This document shows, piece after piece, positions 8,201 to 63,500 of a stretch of DNA of 64,000 bases. The DNA is from Orbicella franksi. Its lineage: Eukaryota. Within the stretch, counting starts at the first letter, position 1. The number at the start of each line of letters is the position of its first letter. The translations under genes and the position numbers were made by a program. A model generated the notes under the pieces. That model worked only from the letters and a program-made list of their open reading frames with translations, was not told the DNA's origin and ran no database searches. The stretch is taken from the NCBI GenBank assembly GCA_964199315.1, contig OZ116699.1, forward strand, positions 1,922,001 through 1,986,000. The letters are read 5' to 3'.

Positions 8201-11200
8201 GTAATGAATATACATGCCGTAAGGCTCATAATCGGGGAATATGGACTGATCAGAAAGTGTTTGTTTTTTTGGTTTGTTAGTTAATGCATATTTACGCGAT
8301 AACCAGCTAAGTCATTCGTCTTATTTGCAGGGACCAAACAGCAGCGGCCACTGGAAGACTAACGTCAGCAAATCCAGTAAGTGCTGTGTGGCTTGCTGCT
8401 GTATATCGATCTTACTTCAACTTCTTTTTGTAAGTAAACCTTTCCCAATCTCGATCCAGCAATGTCATACGTTATTTCCACCACTTACCAGCATTTTCAG
8501 GTAATTAAATTGAAGTAGAAAGCAAAGTGGCCTTTCACTAAAAGCCAATACCGCAAAACTACCCAGTACTTCTATAGTATGGTGGTCACCGTGGTGTCTA
8601 CATTACAGGGGTTAATTATTATGTGTATCTTCGGTTGTCTTGTAGAACCTTCAGGCCATCCCAAAACAAGTTATAGAGGTATCTGGAATCAAGAAACAGT
8701 TCATCGTAGGTACGATAGAACATTGTTTTCCGATTCGGCTTCAGTATCAAAAGAAATGCTCTTCGACGATTTGGAACAAACTAGGAAGATATTTATGTAC
8801 GAAAAGGCTGTATCTATTAAAAAACCTTCCGTGGTCGAGGAAAACCGAATTGAAGACGAGTCTTTGATAAACATGCTCAGAGAGTTTCCTAATTCTCTTC
8901 GTGCAATCTGAATTAGCCAAGGCTCTTAAAATGCTTGTGTATTAATTTTAACTCAATTTATCTCTAGTCTGTGTCTTGTTGCCATGGGAAATGGGTGGAT
9001 GTACAGGTTACAACATTCTAAATGAAATGATACTTATTCCTCAGAAGGCTCACTGTTGCTAAAGGACGGAGCTACAAGGAAATGTAACAGATGAATGAAC
9101 AAAGTAATGCGAGTTGTCACCGAAGGAAAGTCTCCATCTTCTAGACACTGGTTATTCTGAAACCCTTCTTTCATCATCTTTAGGCAAACCGGAAGAAGTG
9201 GTAACCATTTATGCACGGGACGCTTACACAAGTAGAGAAGGCTGGTTATTACTTGCGGCAGGTATTTGGTATTGAATGATTATGTTACTTTAGTTACGCA
9301 CGCCTGCTTGTGACCACAGTAAAATATCTTCTCAGTAATTGACCGGCTGTGGTCTATTTCTAGATTTTCAGTCCATTGAGCTTCGCTTACTGTCCCACCT
9401 GTCCGGAGACCCGTCGCTGATACAGATCTTCAACGACAAACAATGTGCAGACGTATTTACCACACTTGCCTCACAGTGGTAATGTAATAATTTGATTGCT
9501 CTTTCAAAAATGTTCTCGTTTTTACTTTATTTACTATTTGCATTCCCGGTACCAGAAAAAGGATCGATCATCGTGCATTGAATGAGATAATTCTAAGTTT
9601 AAACTAAAAGAAAGTTCCTCCTTATGCCTTAGAACTTTTTCTGATGTACCAAAACCGTATGTCTAGGTTGGACAAAAGCTGTGAGGAAGTTCAGTTTCAT
9701 GAGAGAGAAAGGACCAAACGAATTGTGTATTCTGTTATCTACGGTGTTGGTAAGGAGAACCCTTTACATATATACTGTTTTTTGTTTACTCCTATAAGTC
9801 CTCTCTGAGAAGCACTTGGAAGAATAGTCAACGCGTATAAATATTATATGTTTGTTTTGGTTAACAATTCGTCAATATTTGTTGTACAGGAAGCGAAAAA
9901 CTTGGGCATACCCTCAAAGTGAGTGCTGATGAAGCAAAAGGATTCATTGAGAGCTTTTTAGGTGTGTTTACAATCCCTGTCTGGCACTAGGTTTCTGCTC
10001 CTATAACAGAGATCGTTAATTTTAATTGTACTGAAAAATTCATTATCTATACTGTACTTACGTCTTTTTATGCGTATACGTTGAATAATTTCAGGGAGAT
10101 TTCCAAGAATAAAGGAATTCACCCGACGCTGTATTGAGAGTTGTCAAAGAAACGGTTTGTAACGGAGTAGTTTATGTACTAAGTTCAGAATTGCTTTGGC
10201 CATGTCCAGGTTGAATCAGCTAAATTGTAAGAGATTAGACCTCCGAGAGAAAAGCTGGTCCCACAAAGGACAAAAACTTTGCCTTTAGAGCGACATAGAA
10301 GGGCTTATAGATAGGATATCGTTTAAGTTGACAGAAGAGCCTTGCTCAACTCTACGTTTTCTGTGGCCTCACCATACGTTTGTTTTCTGTAAACAGGCTA
10401 CGTGTCCACCATTTTGAACAGAAGGCGATGGCTGCCACATATCAAGTCTTATGATTTCACCCAAAGATCGCAGGCTGAACGACAGGCTGTCAATTTTATC
10501 GTGCAGGGTTTGTGCGTGTGTAGATTTAATCACCTCTGTTGAACATAACTCCCATGTCTGTCAAAGTTCTTAAAAGTGGTCTCAACATTTTCCCTGAATG
10601 CTGAATAAATACCTGAATTTAACATTTCCCCCTGGCTTCGGATCCATGCAACTTCCTGAAATTTGAACATTTCCATCTAGTCGAAAGTCTCTGGCATTCC
10701 ATCTTAGTTGATATCTCACTGGTTGAATTACCTCACTGGTACGTTCCAAAACGCTTTTAAACCCGGTTCCAAGGCCTTTTCTTTTAAAGGCTTTTTAAAA
10801 ACTGATCAGGCTCGTTGATTTGTAACATTTTGTTTGAATTTAAGGTTCTGCCGCCGATATTTGTAAAGCAGCGATGATTCAGGTCATAAGTGCCATAAGC
10901 GAGGATACCTCTCTGCACGCAAGGTAAAGAACTGTTTTGATGAAGTGTTTCATAATAAGTTGCAATGCAATATTTAAATAGACTTCAAGCTGACTTTCAG
11001 GCTTCATGGCCATCCTTAATTTGTGCTGCCCCTTTCTTTTCACACCCTCATCAAGACAGGCGATTTTTTTAATCGAGTCTTACTTCCACTCTTGCCTCCC
11101 TTTCTCATTTTTTTTTTAAACAGTCCATAGTCAGCGTTTTCTATTACTTAGCGTTTTTAAGTGTAAGTAAGCGACTAAAAACTTTTAACACCAAAATAGT

Positions 11201-51513: not shown

Positions 51514-54500
51514 ATGGACAGCAAGACAGTTCTGTGTGCCTCTGTCACTGGAACAGTAACTTTAAAAGATGACAAAGACTCTGAGGTTAGTTGCTTGTAT
51601 TTTCTTCACTTCGCTACTTAAAGTCACAACTAAGCGAGGAAACGTCGATTAACCGCCGCACCCAAACTCTAACGGAGAAACTTATCGGTAAAACACGAAT
51701 TGCATAAGTGACCTTTTATCAATTAGTCAGCACTATTCACGCCAACCGTAAAGCTTTTCAGGCTAAACGAAGCTACATTCAGCCTAAACGAGTTACTTTC
51801 CAGGGTATCCGCAACCCAGTGCTAAATAATGTTCTCTCTAGAAAACATCAGAGAGAGATTGCGGACCCTGTAATACCTCAAACAAGCTGTGAAAGCATTC
51901 GCCTGCGGCGCGTGTTTTTGAATGTCTCAAACTTTCACTCGATTTTAACTCGATTAAAACTCAACCCTATTTCCAGAGATTTTCCTTAACGAGCTTGGAT
52001 AAAAAGGCAGGAAGTGTTGTTTAATCTCACCTCCTGCTGTTTACATTGATTTTAGACGTCATACACGAATATAGTGCTCGTGCGGTCGAGATTATATAAC
52101 TGTGCCAAGTTCCCAGATGTAGTAAGAATTGTTTAGACGTATTTACATCACGTGAAACGCCACTTCCCTTAGGACATTTTTTATTGAGTGATTTTTTAAG
52201 ACACTTAACTTGTCTCGAAGAAAATTCAAAACTTGCATACCATTACGGTATCTCGTCCAAAAACGATGACAGCCTTAAACTTATGGCACATCACTCCGAT
52301 TGCGGGAAAATCTAACACTAGTGTTCTTTTTTTTTTTTTAATCTATTTTCATTTTTTCGCTCTCCAAGAGTAGAGCTGTTTTCTGCTGCATTCAAGTAGC
52401 GTGTTTTAGTGAGCGAGCGAGCATCTCTCCTGATTGCCTTCATCTGACTAACTCCTCACGTGCTTACGGACACCTCGTCCTTTCGCCATGGCTGTGTTAA
52501 ACACCCGCCCTTTCTTCCTCAAGCTGGGATTACAGCACTCGTCTAGAATACAGCCACCTCTCTTTGTTCACTTGACGTTACATTGGCCTTGTAGCTTTGT
52601 TAGCCTTGAAAGTTTTGTTCACCTGATACTGTACGTTTTCAAGAGTATGTCAGGCATAGGCGCTAGGCGTACGGACAATTTTTCCGGGGTGGGGGGGAGA
52701 ATCACTTTCCCAAAAAATTTTCCCAAGTTTCCCAAATTTTTTATAAAACAATCGATGCAAACATTTTTTAAAAGGTGATTGCATGTTGTCTTTTAGAAAC
52801 CTTTAATTTTCAACGCACTGACAGTATCTCTTTGCAATTCGTGACATTTGGTAAAGAGCATAAGAGGGAAAATTTGCGTGTTTGCGCCTGTGAATTTCGA
52901 CACGGCAGCATTGACAATAAAGCACGCTTCGGTAAAAACATGAATGAAATTTCTGCAATGTTTAAAGTTGTAAACAGTGGGCATTGAGAATGAAAAAAAA
53001 AATCCAAATGCTTGCAAAAATAAAGCTCTCGTCTCAGTGACAACATAAGACACGAAAAATAATGGGTGTTAAGAAAATGCCGACTCTCAGGACGTTTGAG
53101 TGTCGAGACTCACTTTATTGTAATGATTGATTACCAGTATTGTTATTCTCTGTTTTTAGTGACATATATAATAACTTCTCGAAACAAATGGAAACGTTTT
53201 AAAAACCCCTTGCCCAAATTTTTCCTGTTGCCCCAAAAAAACTGACTCAGTGCCCAAATTTTGGGGGTACGCCAATGATGGATTGATTTTCTGAACGTTA
53301 CCACAATTTGCAACAAATTTTATCTGTTGCCTTCTGCACTGCTTTACAAATTGAATAAATGTGTAGGCTTGAAATTTCAATAGTCACGATGTCCTAAGAA
53401 ACCTTCAATTGCGATTCCTTCATCTCTATTGTAGCATGCCATCGCAGAAGTATCTGCGGCTGTGGCTGAATACATCTGCTCTCTATTGAAAATCAGTAAC
53501 GCGGAGTAAAACACTTCGAACCCGCGCTTTCCGAGCGTGGGCACAGGTACAGTGTATGGCGTGGCTCGCTCATTCTATCCACTGGACCAGGGCTAAGCCC
53601 GAAAGGTTTAGTAAACCAGCTATTATTTGACACTTTAAAGAGCCTTTAGCCTGGTCATATTTAGCTAACCTTATTCCACGTGATCTTGTGGTTGGGTGGG
53701 TTGCATAATTACTCGGCTTTCAAGTGGGTTAGTAACAATAGGGCTGCCGGTCATGAAGGAGCACTTGAAAATCAAGAACACCTTTAGTTTAATTAATTCT
53801 CTTGATTTTCTTTAACTTTTACAGACATACAAGATTACCGTTGTTTATGGCGACGGCAGCAAGTCTGTACTTCAAAAGAAGTATGAAGAATTTGTAGACT
53901 TTCAAGTAAGTTTGATTACAGTGTTTTTCTTTTTGCCTCACCAAACGTATTTTTCTGACTGGCTTTTTTAAAACATATTTATTTGAATTTATGCATCAAG
54001 ACTCATTTTCATTATCAATTCGGACAAACAAATACCTTTAGTTATCGCCTTAGGCAAGAGCCATAGTCTCTTGCGAAGTTAGATAGAAGTTCGAACTGCC
54101 GAAAATGAACTTGGAGTTTGGCCGTCGGAGTTTTTCGTTTTTAGGGGCTTCAATTTTTAACAGTTTACCGGCGGACATAAGAACTCTGAACTCTAGGCTT
54201 TTATTTAGGCAAAAGGCGAACGAACATTTTTATTTGTAATTTTTAATCGTGAGTTTTTATATGTTTCCCAATGTACTAGTTTTGCCTTTTTAACTTTTTA
54301 CCTTTTTTAAATTTTTAAATTTTTAAATCTTACAGGATCCCTTTGATAACAGTACTTTATAGTACTGATGGGTTAATCCTGTCTAAAGATTTGTTTATTA
54401 TTTATTATTATTATTATTATTATTATAAAACGAGACCCAGTTTTTTCGGATTATAGATGAAAATGAAACAACAAAATAATAAGATGGCTAATGTTTAAGG

Positions 54501-57500
54501 AAACAGAGGCGGGAATTAAATCAAACAGAATCCTGATGCATTTCAGATGCTAAAATGGTAGATTACAGAAATTTTCCAGTTTCCTGTTGAGATTTCAAGA
54601 TTTTTCATGGAAGAAAACTACTTTTCAGTTTGAAAGCTCACCGAAAGTATTCTGAAAAGAAATGAAAAGCAAAAATATCTTTCTAAAGGTTCAGTGTTTC
54701 TACTTCTCGTCTCCACTATTGTATTAAACGTATTGATCATTATCAACTGAAGGTGAAAAGCTGAAACAAGGTGAGATAGTAAGGTTACCATGTAAGAATA
54801 GATTCTGAATTATGAACTTTCAAAGCAAACAAAAGGAAATTCAAAATAGTAAATATTGGGTAAACTGTCCTTACATGGGTTTAAGGGCTGTGTGTAAACT
54901 TTTGAATCCAATCTCGACATTGTATTTCAAGTGAACGTTCTTACTTCTTCTTTAAACACTCTTACCTCCTATCATTTGCAGGTTACAGTTTATGACTTAC
55001 TCAAGAGTGAGGTTGGCTATTCAAAAAAGACTTCAAGAAGTCTTATTACCAGCCTGCCAGGTGCGTGATTTGAGAAACTATGCTATATGATAATTAGAAG
55101 GACTGTCTTCATTTATAACTCCTTTTGTTGATCGATTTCGAACGCATGTTTTATCCCGATTAAGGTTAGCTTTTTCCTTTAATCATAATTGTCTTAAAAT
55201 CTTCCTCAATAAGATGGCTTGGCCGTTGATTTGGATACCTAATCGTACCTTTCTAGTACGCTTCGGTGGCATATCACGGGAGTTTGGCCTCGCCATGATT
55301 CGCTGATTCGCTTTTTACCCAAAGGCGTACTAAAAATGAAAAAGTACGATTAGGTATTTACCGCACTTATATTCGGCTAAGTGACCATGATATCGTAGAT
55401 ATCGGATATCACATGGTATCAGGCCAGTACGTGGACACACAGGCGGCCCAAGCTCTCAATGTTATCCTTTTTTTTTCCTTTTTATGCGAACGTTCAGGCT
55501 AACGTGACATATGGCGTGTACTATTACATAACGACCGAATTTGACCACGCGAAACATGACTCTCGCCTTGCAGCATATGGAGGTGTTGTGTTACAACGGT
55601 TTGAATTTATAAAGGTTTGTATGGGAATGCCACTGCTTTGCTTGAAAAGCCAATTATTCTAATATTTTGTGAATAAAATCGACTTACCCTGTTGCTGTGT
55701 TGTGTTCTTTGTTGTTTGCCAGCTCCTCAGGCCGATCTAACGCGATTTCGGCGAGTTATCGTTCTGTGGGTTTCCACTACTAAAAGAAAGACAAGGCCGG
55801 ACACTGATTTCCGGAGTGCCCGCCGCTCGAAGCGAATAAATCCACTGAAAATAACCCTGCCGGCTCAATTCCTCCGTAGAATCGAAGAAGAGATGTTGAA
55901 GTTCCATGTCAGTTCACTCGCTACGCGATTCCGTCCACAACGCCTTCGCTACGAAACATTTATTTCCAGATTGCTTCGCTCGCAAAGTCGAAAACAGCCG
56001 TGTCACAAAAGTTAGGACACTTTTGCGGTTCGCATAGTACGTTGGGTCACTAAAATAAGCCCGACCGGGGGTAGTCAGCAACGATTTGTCAACACGCAAA
56101 CCAAAATGCTCCCCGGGTACCCTCGTGATTTATTTGACAAACCCACCAAGACGCGCATTGTTACCACCGGCCAATCAAAATCAAGTCGAGTCGTGTTTAC
56201 AAAATTTCAAACGTAAAACCTAATTTCCCTGAGTAGTGTGCTAATCTATCTCAGCTTCTATGCCAAAAAAGTGATCTACGCCATAACCGTTCATATATTT
56301 TGTAAGTTGTTATCAAACTTCGAACACTGCGAGGGTAAACTGGTAGCAGTCCGGGAAATCCTAGCTGAAGGAGAAAGGATAAAGGAAAACTTTGCCTGTC
56401 CGGCAAGTTTGTGTTTGTTCGGCGTTTTAATTAAACAGATCTGGGGTGATAGAGTAAGGGTCGTCAAACGTGGTTCGCGAAAAGGAAGACAAAACTATTA
56501 CCTAGGTCTTACAAACACAAACTTGCCGGACAGGCAAAGTTTTCCTTTATCCTTTCTCCCTCAGCTAGGATTTCCCGGACTGCTACCAGTTTACCCTCGC
56601 AGTGTTCGAAGTTTGATAACAACTTACAAAATATATGAACGGTTAACGTCTCAATCTACATCGAGATGGGGATAAATGTTGGCGTCGAGCGTTGAGTATA
56701 CTGCAAAACCTATCATGTCTTCCATTTCCACGATGAAGAAGTCATCGTTATGGCGTAGATCACTTTTTTGGCATAGAAGCTGAGATAGATTAGCACACTA
56801 CTCAGGGAAATTAGGTTTTACGTTTGAAATTTTGTAAACACGACTCGACTTGATTTTGATTGGCCGGTGGTAACAATGCGCGTCTTGGTGGGTTTGTCAA
56901 ATAAATCACGAGGGTACCCGGGGAGCATTTTGGTTTGCGTGTTGACAAATCGTTGCTGACTACCCCCGGTCGGGCTTATTTTAGTGACCCAACGTACTAT
57001 GCGAACCGCAAAAGTGTCCTAACTTTTGTGACACGGCTGTTTTCGACTTTGCGAGCGAAGCAATCTGGAAATAAATGTTTCGTAGCGAAGGCGTTGTGGA
57101 CGGAATCGCGTAGCGAGTGAACTGACATGGAACTTCAACATCTCTTCTTCGATTCTACGGAGGAATTGAGCCGGCAGGGTTATTTTCAGTGGATTTATTC
57201 GCTTCGAGCGGCGGGCACTCCGGAAATCAGTGTCCGGCCTTGTCTTTCTTTTAGTAGTGGAAACCCACAGAACGATAACTCGCCGAAATCGCGTTAGATC
57301 GGCCTGAGGAGCTGGCAAACAACAAAGAACACAACACAGCAACAGGGTAAGTCGATTTTATTCACAAAATATTAGAATAATTGGCTTTTCAAGCAAAGCA
57401 GTGGCATTCCCATACAAACCTTTATAAATTCAAACCGTTGTAACACAACACCTCCATATGCTGCAAGGCGAGAGTCATGTTTCGCGTGGTCAAATTCGGT

Positions 57501-60500
57501 CGTTATGTAATAGTACACGCCATATGTCACGTTAGCCTGAACGTTCGCATAAAAAGGAAAAAAAAAAAAGGATAACATTGAGAGCTTGGGCCGCCTGTGG
57601 TGGACACGGCTTTTGATTAGCTCATCAGTTGCGAATTTGGGTACGGTAATAAACGTAACAAAACGACATACATACTGGCTAGTTGTCACGCAGTATTGTC
57701 GTCTCGTCCATAGCAGTGAAAGATGCTAGTATAAACACACAAATTTGACGTACATGGAAGTGACAGGATAAAAACAAATCTGGGTGACTTTAGACGATAT
57801 TCATTGACTAATCAGACGATTTTACCTTGCAGAAAATACCCCAGGATTATCCCGCATTCTCTTTAAGGACAGTGATTTGAAAAAAATGGGGAGAATGGAT
57901 AATTTCATGAAGGTAAATTCTTACGCCATTAACCCTAGTACTCTAACCAAGTCAGGTTCGATTGGTAAAAACATATCATTGTGATCTTATGGGGCACTGC
58001 TCTTTTAATTTAGCATTTAATTTAATATCTTTGTATAATTACAGGAGCTGTTGGCCCTTCCAAGTGCAGTGCAAGAATCTGAAGCGGTCCTGAAATTTTT
58101 CGGTGCCCTTAACAGAAAAAAGGGAACAATTGAAAGGTAAGTATGAGGTACATTATTACACAAGTTTCAATTCATCCAAACCGTCGGCCACTGACCAAAA
58201 TCGATTCCATCCGCAGGTCCTCAGAAGATGAGAAATTGAAAACCGTCAACAAAGTAGCTGAAATGTTAAGTGGTAAGAGAAATACACGTGAAGAATCTGC
58301 CAAAAATATGTTGTTTCAATGCAGTTATTATGCCAACTGTTAGTAGAGTTGACGTTTTGCAAGTTTTTTTCTTAGAGAGTTTATTGCTGTCATAGGCTAG
58401 TATTTTCCTCTAATCTTCCAGAGGGATGGAGAGGTAAATAGAAAGTGATCTTGGAGAAGTAATTCCTCTCAACGAGAAATGCTTTTGAACTTCGAATCTG
58501 ACCCGTCCCCAGTTATCTTCATACAGCTTCATACATAATAAAAAGTCTGTTTTGCTGTTTCTTTTTCTTGAAGGTCGAGATCCGCTCAGAAATATACCTG
58601 AACAAAGTCCATTAGTAAAGAGAAAGGCGAAACATAACTCGAACAGGATTGCGGAGGACCAGACTGTCCTCAGCGGGGAAACAAGTGATCACAAAACATT
58701 GCTCAGATTGAATGCACGACAGCCTGATAAAAGTATTCCAGTGATTACTGGTAAAGCGAGAGCAGCCACCTTGGATGATGAAATTCTCATCCGAAACACG
58801 GCATCTCAAAGACCTGGTCTGAAGAAGAGGCCTTTCAGTGCTGGTGTCGGTCTTGCTGATTTTGTCAGGCAAACTGAGGAAGTGAAAGGAAGGATGCTCG
58901 GGAGAGAAGAAAGCCTTTCAGCACATGACGAGAATTCAGTCATTGATTCTGAGTATTCTAAAGTGGCGGAGACACACTTCAGACCCGAAATTCTTGTAAC
59001 GCATTGCCATGGAACAGCGAGCCCCAATAGGAAAACGCATGTCGTTATTGCGTCATATTTAGCAGAGGAAAGAGGCGAGGTGTCCCTAGAGGAGGGCGAG
59101 GAGTTTGACTTGCTACAGAAAGAGTCTAACGGTTGGTGGTACGTCAAAAATGATTTCTGTGAGGGGTGGGCACCAAGTGCTTTCCTGGCACCTGCCAGAT
59201 CCAGGCCCCCATCTCCAGAGACGCCAGATCAGCAGCAAGTTTCAGACAGTCAGGAAGAGTCTTGCCACATCAAAGAAAATTTGGAAACCTGTCCCAAAGA
59301 GCAAGGTGTTGACCAGATAAAATTCGCCCCTCAAGGAAAAGAGAAGGTACGTATTATTTTCATTAATTGACTGACGCCATTGCCTGACACGAAATGTAAG
59401 GCAGTAGTATAATTTTATGCTCAATGAAGCGTTAGGGACATCACGTGACAGACTCTGGCATTTGTTTTTCAGTCTCCAGATAAAAACGTTGCAAGACAAG
59501 CTCAGACGATGACAACCGAAATGAACCGACGAGCCAAGTTCCTTACAGTTGAAGGAATACAAAAGAGGAAGAATCCTGATAAAAACTACGTAAGTAAAGT
59601 TATTGTTGTTCCTTTTCTCTCATTAATGAAAATAAAAAGTTTTAAGAAACTCTCAAAGCTGTAGTCGAGAGTCTATTGGTTTCAATATGGTGATACTTTC
59701 AAAAGAGAAAATTATGTTCAAATTGTCTCCGATTTGAGTTCATTTGCCGTTCAAAAACAACTAAAACCTGAACACGCTGTAAAAAGTTGGGCAAATTTTA
59801 AGATCCGCGCATCTTCATTTTCTTCTATGTGTCTGTACTATTATTGACAATAAACATAAGTCAATGAGCGCGCGAAAAAATTTGACATTATTGTAAAATA
59901 ACATTCGTTATTTTCATAACCTCTACTAAGATGTTTATCTCATAGCAAAAATTATAAAGAGTTACCAATATATAATTTCAAATCTTCTCCAGGTTTATAT
60001 TGTCAAAGTGGTGTGGTCAGATGGAAATATCAATATAATTTACAGGACATGCAGCGATTTTTTCTTTCTTCAGGTAATTGTAAATATCTGTTCAAAACTC
60101 TTCCAAGGTTAATTTCTTAATTTAATTTGGGCCGGTTTTTCTTTGTAGCACATAGGTCTTGCATTGAAGGACTATGTTTTTAATAAAGGATATTATATTT
60201 AAGGGACCAAATTTTTTTTTTTTTTTTTTTCATTTATGTAATGCTCACGCTCAAATTGCAATATTGGTTATACGCATATATATTTATAACATAAGTACAA
60301 CGTAACAAAGCCGTTACAAACAAACTGATTTATGCTTTTAGCTGCATGTATATCATCAAGTTATCATGTACTTGGTGACGTTTGTAGAGCACTCAATTCA
60401 AGAAACGAGCATTGTGCCCCGTCGAGCAACTCTCACGATTGTTTCCTGTTTCCAAACTTCCAACATGCATTGTAACTCTATGACGCGTGCTAACTTGAAT

Positions 60501-63500
60501 CGTCATTCCGGCAAGTGCTTCTTTGGTAAAAGTTGTTACGAAATAAGGCCAGTGAAAAGGTAACAAAACTTTTGTTATTCTTTGGTCTTGTTTGTCTTGT
60601 TGTATAGGAAAACCTCAGAAAGGAATTTCCGACAGCCATTGGAAAGGAAATCCCTGCGCTTAAAGGTAACAAATTAAATCCCAAAATATTTGTCAATTCC
60701 AATTCATCACAAAGTTACCTCAATACATTTAACATTATGCAGCTTTCAGAAGAAGTTTTTACTCATTTATATTTTTCTAGGGAGGAAATTCAATGAAAAC
60801 TGCCAGCTCTGCTTTAAAGATGGAACGTGCAAGAGACAGAAGTTCATGAATCAATTCTGCCACGTAAGTCAAAACAAAATTTAATCCAGTCACCAAATAG
60901 AAGTGTATCCACAGATTTGTGAAAAAAGTGCCTCAGCAGAGACAAGTGCCAAGGAATTTAATAAGGCCTAAGATCCTCTAAAGCTTTTTATTTTGTTTTC
61001 AGGAACTAATCAATGCACCTGACAACATCTCAAAAAGCAAAGTTGTTATGGACTTCTGCAGGTCTCGTGCCAGTGATGTCCATTCTCATGGAAAGTGAGT
61101 AGTCGTTCCTTCGTTTCTCCGTTCCTTCGTTCCTTCGTTTCTCCGTTCCTTCGTTCCTTCGTACCTTCGTTCCTTCGTTTCTTCGTTCCCTCGTTCTCAA
61201 ATCTCTACTACCTAAGAAAAGATCCCGAATCATTGAAAAATGGGAAATGTCTAGAGTGCAGTTCGTACCTTTTATAAATTTGTTGTGATGAGATGCCTCT
61301 GAGCATTAACATTTGCCAACAATTTGTCGTTTATTCTCAGGGCTACGAAAAAGGATGGGAAGTCACCAAAGAGTAAGTCTATTCCACAAGTTTTATTTTC
61401 TCATAGATTCTTGATAATTTGCAACTAATTATTGCTGGAATTTACTTTCAATAAAATGTAAACTATTTTCTTGTAAATTTGCTATGCAGCTGAGGACAAC
61501 AACGTGGAGATCTCGGCACCAATGATGTTTGAACAATACGTAGTGACAGCTGATTACCAGAAGAAAAACAAGAATGACATTTCTCTCAAAGCTGGCGATA
61601 TAATTGATGTCATTGAACGGAACGACTACGGTGAGACATAAGAAAAGTTATTTATTTCTCGTTTGATTTGAAGGACCAAGTAACTTTCGCAGTATCTCTC
61701 GAGAAATTGAGATTTTATTCTCGGGTGTTCCTTCCGAGTTCACAGTGGTATCACAAGAATTAGTCTGTTGCCTGTTCATAAGTACGATTTGAAGGACCAG
61801 TGACTTTTGCGGAAGATCTGGAGAAATTGTGATTAATCCTTGTGAACTCATTGTGGCATCAAAAGCTTTAGCTTGTTGCCTAGCAACAGCCATGAGGAAT
61901 GCAGGCTTGGGGTTCTCAGAATGTAGTTATTGACATGAATTAAAATAATTATTCCCTTCAATATTTTCATTTCTCTTTCTTTTCTTTGTAAGGCTGGTGG
62001 CTTGTTGACCGGGAAGGAGAGTTAGGTTGGGCTCCTGCATCTCATCTTGAGCCCACGGACAACGGGTCAGAGATTACAACGTCAAAAGTCTTTGCACCCG
62101 GAAAAGGTAAGCTTACCTCTGTTAACAATGAGGAATGGTTTTGGAATGACAAGAGATTAACTTAGTGACTTTTAATTATAAGAAAATTGTGACATTCAGG
62201 GATGCGTTTAACTCCGAGATGTACCATGTTGGAAACTCCCCATGGATTTTCTTGTAGACATACCAAACTTATTTTCCTTTTGTACATAGCTCCCATATTA
62301 CCCTACATACAAGATTTGTTTGTAGGTTATGACATCAGATGACCCCATTAAATGCGCCATATTGGATCCTCCATGTTAGATTTCATTTCTTCAGAAAGTC
62401 AGAAACGAAATGATGCTAATTGATTAATCCCAAAATGATAATCGCATGAAAAAAGTAGTAACTCTACAATGCTGCTTGGGAAATTGTGGAAACAAAAATT
62501 AAAAATGCCCAAAAAAGAAAATTTGGCTTCATCTAAAATGACGTGGGTGGGAGGCGCGGTGGCCTCATGGTTAGTGCGCTCGTCTCCGGATCGAGCGGTC
62601 CGGGTTCGAGCCCTGGCCGGGGACATTGTGTTGTGTTCTTGGGCAAGACACTTCACTCTCACAGTGCCTCTCTCCACCCAGGTGTATAAATGGGTACCGG
62701 CGAACTTAATGCTGGGGGCTAACCCTGCGATGGACTAGCATCCCATCCAGGGGGGAGTAGAAATACTCTTAGTGGCTTCATGCTACAGAAACCGGGATAA
62801 GCTCCGGCCTGATGGGCCACTTGGCTCGTGTGCAGACTTTACCGTTTTTTACCAAAATGACGTGGTAAAACTATTGACACATCAAAATTTCTGCTCGGAA
62901 TGAATTAACAGCTACTGAAAGTTTCATCGCGACAGAGTAAATCTCTTGTACGTCGGATTGTTAATATATCAGAAGTATGTGCCGTTTTCCAGCATCGAAG
63001 TATCTGTAAAGTACACAGTGATAAAGGTGACCGTGTATTTTGCTTCAATTCAACAGAGGAGATATACATGTCTCTAGAAAGCTATCAGGCTAAAGCTGAC
63101 GATGAGCTGACTTTTGATGCTGACGTAATGCTTAAAGTGGTGGAAAAGACTTTAGATGGATGGTGGCTCGTAAGGTAAATAAAAAAAATATTTGCATTTG
63201 TTCTATTTTGCTGTTGTTGTTGTTGTTGTTGTTGTTGTTGTCTGAAATTCCTTTCCTGACATTCTTTAGATTTATTTTTGGATTGTTCAGTTCATCTTCT
63301 CAGATTCTGCAAAAACGATGTCAATTACTTACACAGCATTAAAATTATTTCATTAGGTACCAGGGAGAGGAAGGCTGGGCTCCTGCCATGCTCCTAAAAA
63401 GAGTCAATTCTGATGAATCCTCCACTTCAATGATAGGGGGAAAAGATCCTTTGGACACAGTTTCCTTCACCGGAGGTAAGCTGCTGTCACTGAATATTCC

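Follow-up and report, generated by a model that had tools for sequence, protein, structure and literature searches.

We analysed a 64,000-nucleotide stretch of the genome of the reef-building coral Orbicella franksi (contig OZ116699.1, positions 1,922,001 to 1,986,000), hereafter called the window, whose numbering is used unless another sequence is named. A long foldback structure in this window is, with a probability of roughly 0.87, a non-autonomous copy, palindromised and with internal sequence deleted, of a cnidarian element of the P superfamily, inserted by cut-and-paste transposition into an intron of a gene with PX and SH3 domains, with both arms derived from the same end of the parent element. 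The window copy itself is an ordinary non-autonomous intronic transposon. The parent family is unusual in pairing a P-type transposase with a PIF1-like helicase, and this pairing, together with the recurrent formation of kilobase palindromes, is the notable result.

The foldback was located with a repeat search (find_repeats) and a global self-alignment at 55438-57599, a length of 2,162 bp. This is exactly the position given in a first-pass annotation of the same DNA, and the 7-bp target-site duplication (TSD) GTGGACA reported there was recovered directly abutting both ends. The arms had been described as approximately 985 bp long, which holds for the left arm (981 bp), whereas the right arm measures 1,089 bp, of which 105 bp have no match in the left arm. 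The paired blocks are 55468-56287/56747-57566 (820 nt, 100% identity), 56284-56418/56511-56645 (135 nt, 99%) and the terminal 39 nt (100%), and the longest unbroken complementary stretch between the arms is 810-820 bp. The differences consist of a T9 run at 55468-55476 against an A12 run at 57558-57569, one substitution (56369 versus 56560), and the 105-bp segment at 56646-56750 of the right arm, which is bounded by the 4-nt repeat GTTA. The run-length difference and the substitution had been noted before; the indel had been given as 101 bp. By comparison with a long copy of the family, the indel is a deletion in the left arm and not an insertion in the right arm.

RNA folding of the element gave -1986 kcal/mol, compared with approximately -606 for shuffled sequences. 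In the predicted fold 980 of the 981 left-arm bases pair with the right arm, the longest perfect helix being 810 bp, and the pairing is far beyond chance. There are zero N bases in the window. No noteworthy tandem or direct repeats were found inside an arm, and the open reading frames (ORFs) of the window copy are purely mechanical, giving it no coding capacity.

The source genome assembly (497 Mb in 805 contigs) was searched using the left half of the element as query, resulting in at least 80 family matches. The terminal 30-mer, allowing up to 3 mismatches, was found 108 times in forward and 103 times in reverse orientation, a total of 211 termini compared with 0 in the control, which corresponds to roughly 100 elements. 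The majority are 1.38-kb foldbacks made of two terminal inverted repeats (TIRs), with arms of approximately 708 and 685 bp, and share 93-94% identity with the window copy; in a smaller group, which includes two long copies on contigs C14 and C4, the identity is 97-98%. Perfect 7-bp TSDs of unrelated sequence flank 17 of the 19 copies with pairable ends, the window copy included, so the duplication seen in the first pass is not a single-locus feature. The TSD-bearing copies share the termini CACAGG...CCTGTG, i.e. CACAGGCGGCCC...GGGCCGCCTGTG.

A matching TSD is missing at one short copy and at the long copy on C4; the C14 long copy, which was checked separately, has none either. Each long copy is bounded by 7-mers that do not match (Table 1). 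Galileo copies bounded in this way mark ectopic exchange or inversion breakpoints. The flanks of the two long copies were compared by eye as mutual inversion partners, only these two being considered, and no match was found. The sequence at C14:21760618-21770378, considered as a third long copy, was rejected, as it consists of a short element and a solo TIR.

Two genes in tail-to-tail arrangement, on opposite strands, are present in the long copies. The first is an uninterrupted helicase ORF of 783-808 amino acids matching PF05970 (E values of 1e-22 to 1e-25), in which the Walker A and B motifs are intact as judged by eye. Its C-terminal extension of approximately 350 amino acids gave no family match, and an Atlas search with the C-terminal half gave no usable match.

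The second gene encodes the transposase in multiple exons. These exons, as well as the PX exons of the host gene, were examined exon by exon and not as joined sequences. Pfam gave no match on single short transposase exons, and a colinear profile was needed. Its source was a set of three P-like ORFs without introns found elsewhere in this genome; PF21787 and PF21788 are present in them, and their tblastn matches to the long copy are colinear. Reversed-sequence decoys served as control. On the minus strand of the C14 copy, eight open segments are covered by the profile in perfect order, from profile positions 238 to 772, with segment E values between 5e-11 and 0.14, the best decoy having 4.2. 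The last large open segment matches the Pfam family PF21789 (TNP-like_RNaseH_C) with 31 bits against a cut-off of 24. The sole PDB match of this segment is the Drosophila P-element transposase 6P5A, with homology to residues 506-552, and its Atlas neighbours carry PF21788, PF21789 and PF22824. The domain order is that of P and THAP9, i.e. the N-terminal part of the RNase H fold, a GTP-binding insertion and the C-terminal part of the RNase H fold.

The N-terminal open segment of the transposase, which comprises 255 amino acids (L032 8728-9492, minus strand; window 56288-56510), is conserved in the metagenome contig L062 with 30-38% identity over residues 45-201, and is probably a real domain without an assigned family. 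A reading of window 56288-56510 as an RFX-type winged helix was not retained: neither Pfam nor PDB supported it, and the single-sequence AlphaFold model of the 255 amino acids was unusable and too poor to judge it, with a predicted local distance difference test (pLDDT) score of 36. Elsewhere in the genome, at least 24 further loci score above the Pfam cut-off for the N-terminal RNase H domain of the P type; several of these are long intronless ORFs of 520-1,400 amino acids, so the coral carries several other P-like lineages or domesticated genes.

Both genes are part of the element. In deletion derivatives on C11 and C1 that are flanked by TSDs, the first approximately 55 helicase codons remain beside one TIR, and the window copy keeps the transposase-side 5' region beside the other. 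The convergent pair of helicase and transposase, with the same exon pieces, is also present at diverged loci on C8, C10 and C5, with 50-82% amino acid identity over the matched pieces. Furthermore, the pair occurs in metagenome contigs, namely L062, where the helicase is 47% identical and six transposase pieces lie on the opposite strand, as well as L063 and L073 (coral metagenome). The pairing is kept down to 38-47% helicase identity. Full-length relatives of the helicase were found in Orbicella (99%), Desmophyllum, Stylophora, Oculina, Paramuricea and Exaiptasia. The parent lineage couples a P-type DDE transposase with a Pif1-family helicase, a coupling conserved across diverged copies and metagenome contigs. 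In a literature search, no paper linking the P superfamily with a Pif1-like helicase was found.

The gene pairing is an observation; a functional link of the helicase and the lack of a prior description are part of a proposal only, which we put forward tentatively and regard as doubtful. According to this proposal, the elements form an undescribed cnidarian clade of the P superfamily, in which a helicase with a conserved C-terminal extension of approximately 350 amino acids always lies tail-to-tail with a transposase that has a non-THAP N-terminal domain. During excision or gap repair, hairpins or cruciforms formed by the kilobase TIRs would be the substrate of the helicase, and the recurrent palindromisation of the window and C4 copies would result from the helicase acting or failing to act.

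The origin of the two arms was traced by alignment to the C14 copy. The right arm contains the TIR, the 105-bp segment and the 135-bp start of the transposase-side coding region, and aligns as a whole over 1,096 bp, at 97.4% identity, to the transposase-side end (L036 1398-2491). The left arm matches both ends of the C14 copy up to approximately position 766, whereas positions 767-981 match the transposase-side end only, inverted; this second part corresponds to long-copy positions of approximately 767-850 plus the 135-bp stretch, without the 105 bp present in the right arm. The 92-bp centre carries on the inverted parent copy, with one mismatch in the loop and identity with the parent up to 56512. 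There the colinearity stops, and the palindromic partner begins at 56511, leaving a 2-nt overlap AC at the strand switch (56511-56512). Because both arms are colinear with one parent end and meet in this overlap, the window copy consists of two copies of the parent's transposase-side end fused head-to-head, reaching approximately 1,180 and 1,089 nt inward. The C4 copy is the mirror case, in which the helicase-side end is duplicated, with arms of 1,336 nt at 100% identity (approximately 1,367 bp with the termini).

The palindrome most likely originated when synthesis switched strand or template (snap-back) while a parent copy was being replicated or repaired across a gap, by which two copies of the transposase-side end were joined head-to-head at a 2-nt microhomology. 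The 105 bp between the GTTA repeats would have been lost from one arm, either later or simultaneously. The copy was inserted in cut-and-paste fashion into an older repeat resembling a miniature inverted-repeat transposable element (MITE), duplicating 7 bp of the target; the transposase would have been supplied in trans. The same process may account for TIR extension in the '2RT' copies of Galileo, and would have acted independently at the other end in the C4 copy. Having intact termini, the window copy could be mobilised given an active transposase. The window and C4 copies offer clean, datable breakpoints (microhomologies of 2 nt and 4 nt) for studying how long palindromes arise and persist.

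The two arms of the window copy show 0 differences over the first 600 bp and 1 in 981 overall (0.1%). Arm divergence in 14 other two-arm copies is 0.17-1.83%, in the C4 copy 0.33% and in the C14 copy 1.0%. Since arms diverge in the copies of the family, the window foldback is among the youngest structures of the family. Every other copy differs from it by 1.5% or more. All three DNA data sets that were compared contain the insertion; these are Logan contigs from DNA runs X1, X7 and X13, which carry three organism labels. The earlier description as 'young' is thus upheld relative to the family (0.1% versus 0.17-1.8%); it does not extend to polymorphism or a very recent insertion, as all three DNA sets have it and no empty allele was found.

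Among the rival explanations, the one that survives best, although we consider it unlikely, is formation of the palindrome in place. An ordinary deletion derivative, with the left TIR at one side and the right end at the other, would have been inserted first, and gene conversion or hairpin-templated repair would then have copied right-end sequence leftward, so that arm identity was kept by conversion or repair and is uninformative on age. It is in line with this that both copies with extended arms, the window copy and the C4 copy (1,336 nt at 100%), also have the most perfect arms, that no sibling copy of the same structure is present in the assembly, and that the insertion occurs under three organism labels. 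However, ordinary two-TIR copies reach an arm divergence of 0.2-1.8%, which shows that homogenisation is not general, and the 2-nt junction and the colinearity with the parent fit one switch event equally well.

The claim that the foldback lies inside an intron is borne out by sequence signals, as the PX coding pieces on both sides have canonical AG/GT borders and a continuous frame. Single PX exons lack the length needed for a Pfam match. No spliced RNA contig was seen at the host gene, and the intron status is therefore taken from the sequence signals. Without the element and one TSD copy the intron would have approximately 604 bp. Upstream, the preceding intron contains a very high-copy short repeat (54094-54290; summed depth 2,000-4,400 compared with approximately 40-60 for single-copy sequence); a (TTA)n microsatellite comes next, in the vicinity of 54400-54430.

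Within the pre-mRNA, a stem of approximately 1 kb would form from the two arms and loop the insert out, so that the effect on splicing may be small. The stem could be a substrate of Dicer or ADAR. The targeting by ADAR or RNAi, the cruciform extrusion and the effect on splicing proposed in the first pass are conjectural, the computed part being the thermodynamic hairpin. For the host gene, the effect would be limited to a longer intron with an RNA hairpin of approximately 1 kb.

An RNA library (X15), which is 1-2% diverged from the window and whose contigs may come from another species, was also compared. A 310-nt contig of this library (57600-57859) stops matching exactly at 57600, leaving 50 unmatched letters, and the depth of the copy-specific centre is 0-3.6 compared with 20-31 in the flanking intron. 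This pattern may reflect an empty site in that sample or relative, or poor recovery of the hairpin.

We regard it as very unlikely that the locus is kept as a hairpin RNA giving endogenous small interfering RNAs, or as a regulatory structure of the host gene, and is something other than neutral debris. A near-perfect stem of approximately 1 kb is indeed predicted, each of the three DNA data sets contains the insertion, and the low X15 depth of the centre could result from processing, or equally from the sample having no insertion. On the other hand, the arms follow the family consensus and show no sign of host-specific change, approximately 100 similar foldbacks exist elsewhere, and the X15 contigs, being 1-2% off the window, are maybe from another species.

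Palindromes are a known artefact of long reads, and a chimeric fold-back read or a mis-join could have produced the structure during assembly. The DNA contigs were compared with window 53700-59600; the runs may include the assembly's own source, so they are not fully independent evidence. In every run a single contig, 1,063 nt long, covers the left junction, starting at 54436 and reaching 55464 within the element, and another of 1,586-1,588 nt covers the right junction, from 57572-57574 to 59159. These junction contigs have single-copy depth and differ from the window in 0-3 letters. X13 further gave a 152-nt contig (56389-56540) that consists of the loop and 30 nt of each arm, which is what an assembly with k=31 is expected to yield for a copy-specific centre.

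The target of the insertion, the older MITE-like repeat, is split by the element into two halves. Three paralogous copies of it (L051, L053 and L054) align uninterrupted across the insertion point. This repeat has internal inverted units of approximately 65 bp and many diverged copies in the genome. No clean joint of an empty site was found among the contigs of X1, X7 and X13. A joint of 55398 to 57629 in the DNA contigs (side 21 nt) was rejected as an empty allele: it lies off the TSD, its depth equals that of the junction contigs and is not half of it, and the flank is a multi-copy MITE.

Because junction and centre contigs exist in the DNA data sets and paralogous sites are uninterrupted, the palindrome is genuine and no assembly artefact, in agreement with the first-pass annotation, which had argued for a real insertion from the TSD. 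Although no read across the whole element was seen, an artefact is extremely unlikely for further reasons: the arms are asymmetric in the indel, the T9/A12 run and the substitution, the centre of 92 bp is unique, and the perfect 7-bp TSD obeys the family rule.

Hardly any weight can be given to assignment to another TIR superfamily (hAT with an 8-bp TSD GTGGACAC, or Foldback/MuDR) in which the P-type gene of the long copies is a nested passenger: the duplication at the window locus also fits an 8-bp reading shifted by 1 nt, and TSDs are missing at both long copies, but the TSD is exactly 7 bp in 17 copies, the transposase-side 5' region is contiguous with the TIR in the window copy, the helicase 5' end lies beside the other TIR in the TSD-flanked C11 and C1 copies, the gene pair is syntenic in diverged loci, and no other transposase was seen in the long copies.

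Several observations weigh against the interpretation as a palindromised P-superfamily copy. No THAP domain, the N-terminal zinc-finger DNA-binding domain of the P superfamily, was found in the transposase: the 255-amino-acid N-terminal segment has no match to THAP, RFX or any other family in Pfam or PDB and no C2CH pattern, although a further upstream exon is possible. In the sole copy with a whole transposase region, the reading frame changes within a run of eight A (A8) that lies between the first and the second open segment (L032 approximately 8728-8866, minus strand); the change is either real or a homopolymer-length error of the assembly, and any active source is therefore putative. Even the nearest long copy has no more than 97.4% identity with the window copy, which means that the assembly does not contain the true parent, and both long copies are without TSDs. 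Conversion within the element, instead of youth, could account for the near-perfect arms. Short-read contigs are unable to cross the arms, and a long read spanning them was not seen. A reconstructed 34-nt empty site, with 3 mismatches allowed, had no match in the coral's own assembly, which holds no empty haplotig, and the exact 26-nt empty-site pattern is absent from the metagenome contigs.

Table 1. Coordinates of the element, its long relatives and the host gene (window numbering unless a locus is named)
Feature	Position	Strand	Remarks
Left TSD copy GTGGACA	55431-55437		directly abuts left end
Left arm, whole	55438-56418		981 bp
Left arm part 1, TIR proper	55438-56203	+	approximately 766 bp; starts CACAGGCGGCCC; 97-98% identical to both ends of long copies
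Left arm part 2	56204-56418	+	inverted copy; matches L036 (transposase-side end) only
Unpaired centre (loop)	56419-56510		92 bp
Centre plus 2 nt	56419-56512	+	colinear continuation of left-arm copy of parent
Right arm	56511-57599	-	1,089 bp; colinear copy of parent's transposase-side end
Right TSD copy GTGGACA	57600-57606		directly abuts right end
Older MITE-like repeat, left half	55227-55437		insertion target
Older MITE-like repeat, right half	57607-57665		insertion target
C14 long copy	C14:14960550-14970490		9,941 bp; sole copy with whole transposase region
PIF1-like helicase ORF in C14 copy (L032, G000:C14:14960050-14970049)	L032 1503-3929	+	
Multi-exon P-type transposase in C14 copy (L032)	L032 approximately 9492-4911	-	tail-to-tail with helicase
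Non-matching 7-mers bounding C14 long copy	G000:C14:14960543-14960549 / 14970491-14970497		
C4 long copy	C4:30779751-30786371		6,621 bp
Arms of C4 long copy (L031, G000:C4:30779251-30786871)	L031 501-1867 and 5756-7121		include first approximately 129 helicase codons
Non-matching 7-mers bounding C4 long copy	G000:C4:30779744-30779750 / 30786372-30786378		
Diverged same-genome loci with gene pair	L055/L058, L056/L059, L057		
Host PX coding piece 1	53825-53906	+	
Host PX exon, second coding piece	54981-55059	+	acceptor ...ttgcag, donor gtgcgt
Host intron	55060-57832	+	2,773 bp; from splice signals and frame
Host PX exon, third coding piece	57833-57913	+	acceptor ...ccttgcag, donor gtaaat
Host PX coding piece 4	58045-58137	+	
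SH3 matches (PF00018)	58489-59367, 61477-61638, 62909-63175		downstream of PX pieces

The family was compared with the known systems that it resembles. The Rep/Hel proteins of Helitrons are known transposon-borne Pif1-family helicases (PMC8788227), and the coral element likewise carries a Pif1-family helicase (PF05970) on a mobile element. In contrast to the Rep-Hel organisation of Helitrons, which lack TIRs and TSDs, the coral helicase is a separate ORF that begins approximately 25 residues before the helicase domain, has no Rep, is convergent with a DDE-type transposase, and lies within the TIRs of an element that makes TSDs. hAT elements have TSDs of 8 bp, compared with 7 bp in 17 copies here. 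The overall foldback look is shared with Foldback (FB) of Drosophila and with MuDR/Foldback elements. FB-type elements have repetitive TIRs and 9-bp TSDs, whereas the TIRs of the coral family are unique sequence, its TSD is 7 bp and its transposase is of the P type.

An RNase-H-like core with a GTP-binding insertion, which is used to define the P superfamily, was found in the long copy and not in the noncoding window copy, and of the TSDs of 7-8 bp expected in this superfamily, 7 bp were found in 17 of 19 copies. With those of the Drosophila P element and human THAP9, the coral transposase shares the succession of TNP-like RNaseH_N, the GTP-binding insertion and RNaseH_C. As a rule, non-autonomous P elements have internal deletions with microhomology at the junctions. 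The P element differs in its 31-bp TIRs, 8-bp TSD, THAP domain and single gene.

With Galileo, a single-gene element of Drosophilidae, the coral family shares a P-type transposase in the parent, a 7-bp TSD and TIRs that range from hundreds of bp to above 1 kb. Compared with the approximately 0.3-1.2 kb of Galileo TIRs, those of the coral family are approximately 766 bp in the long copy, 981/1,089 bp in the window copy and approximately 1,367 bp in the C4 copy. Galileo-like elements seed inversions via ectopic recombination. The differences are that Galileo TIRs are internally repetitive, whereas the coral TIRs are unique sequence without internal tandem repeats, and that the coral family has no detected THAP domain, a second gene (the PIF1-like helicase), a transposase in at least 8 exons and a scleractinian host. 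Of the first-pass assignment to a Galileo-type element of the P superfamily, the P superfamily with Galileo-like long TIRs is upheld by the TSDs and the P/THAP9-type transposase; membership in Galileo proper is not supported, with non-repetitive TIRs, the THAP domain not being found, two genes and a cnidarian host speaking against it.

Galileo comprises nearly complete copies, deletion derivatives, abundant two-TIR copies and a '2RT' class in which an inverted duplication of internal sequence adjoining one end has lengthened the TIRs; '2RT' copies with extended TIRs and copies bounded by non-matching 7-mers are both found in D. mojavensis (PMC3573991). The same structural classes are present in the coral family, including the extended TIRs of the window and C4 copies and the long copies without TSDs. 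Galileo-like behaviour, with kilobase TIRs, a 7-bp TSD, recurrent TIR extension and TSD-less copies, is thus found outside Drosophila, in a reef-building coral.

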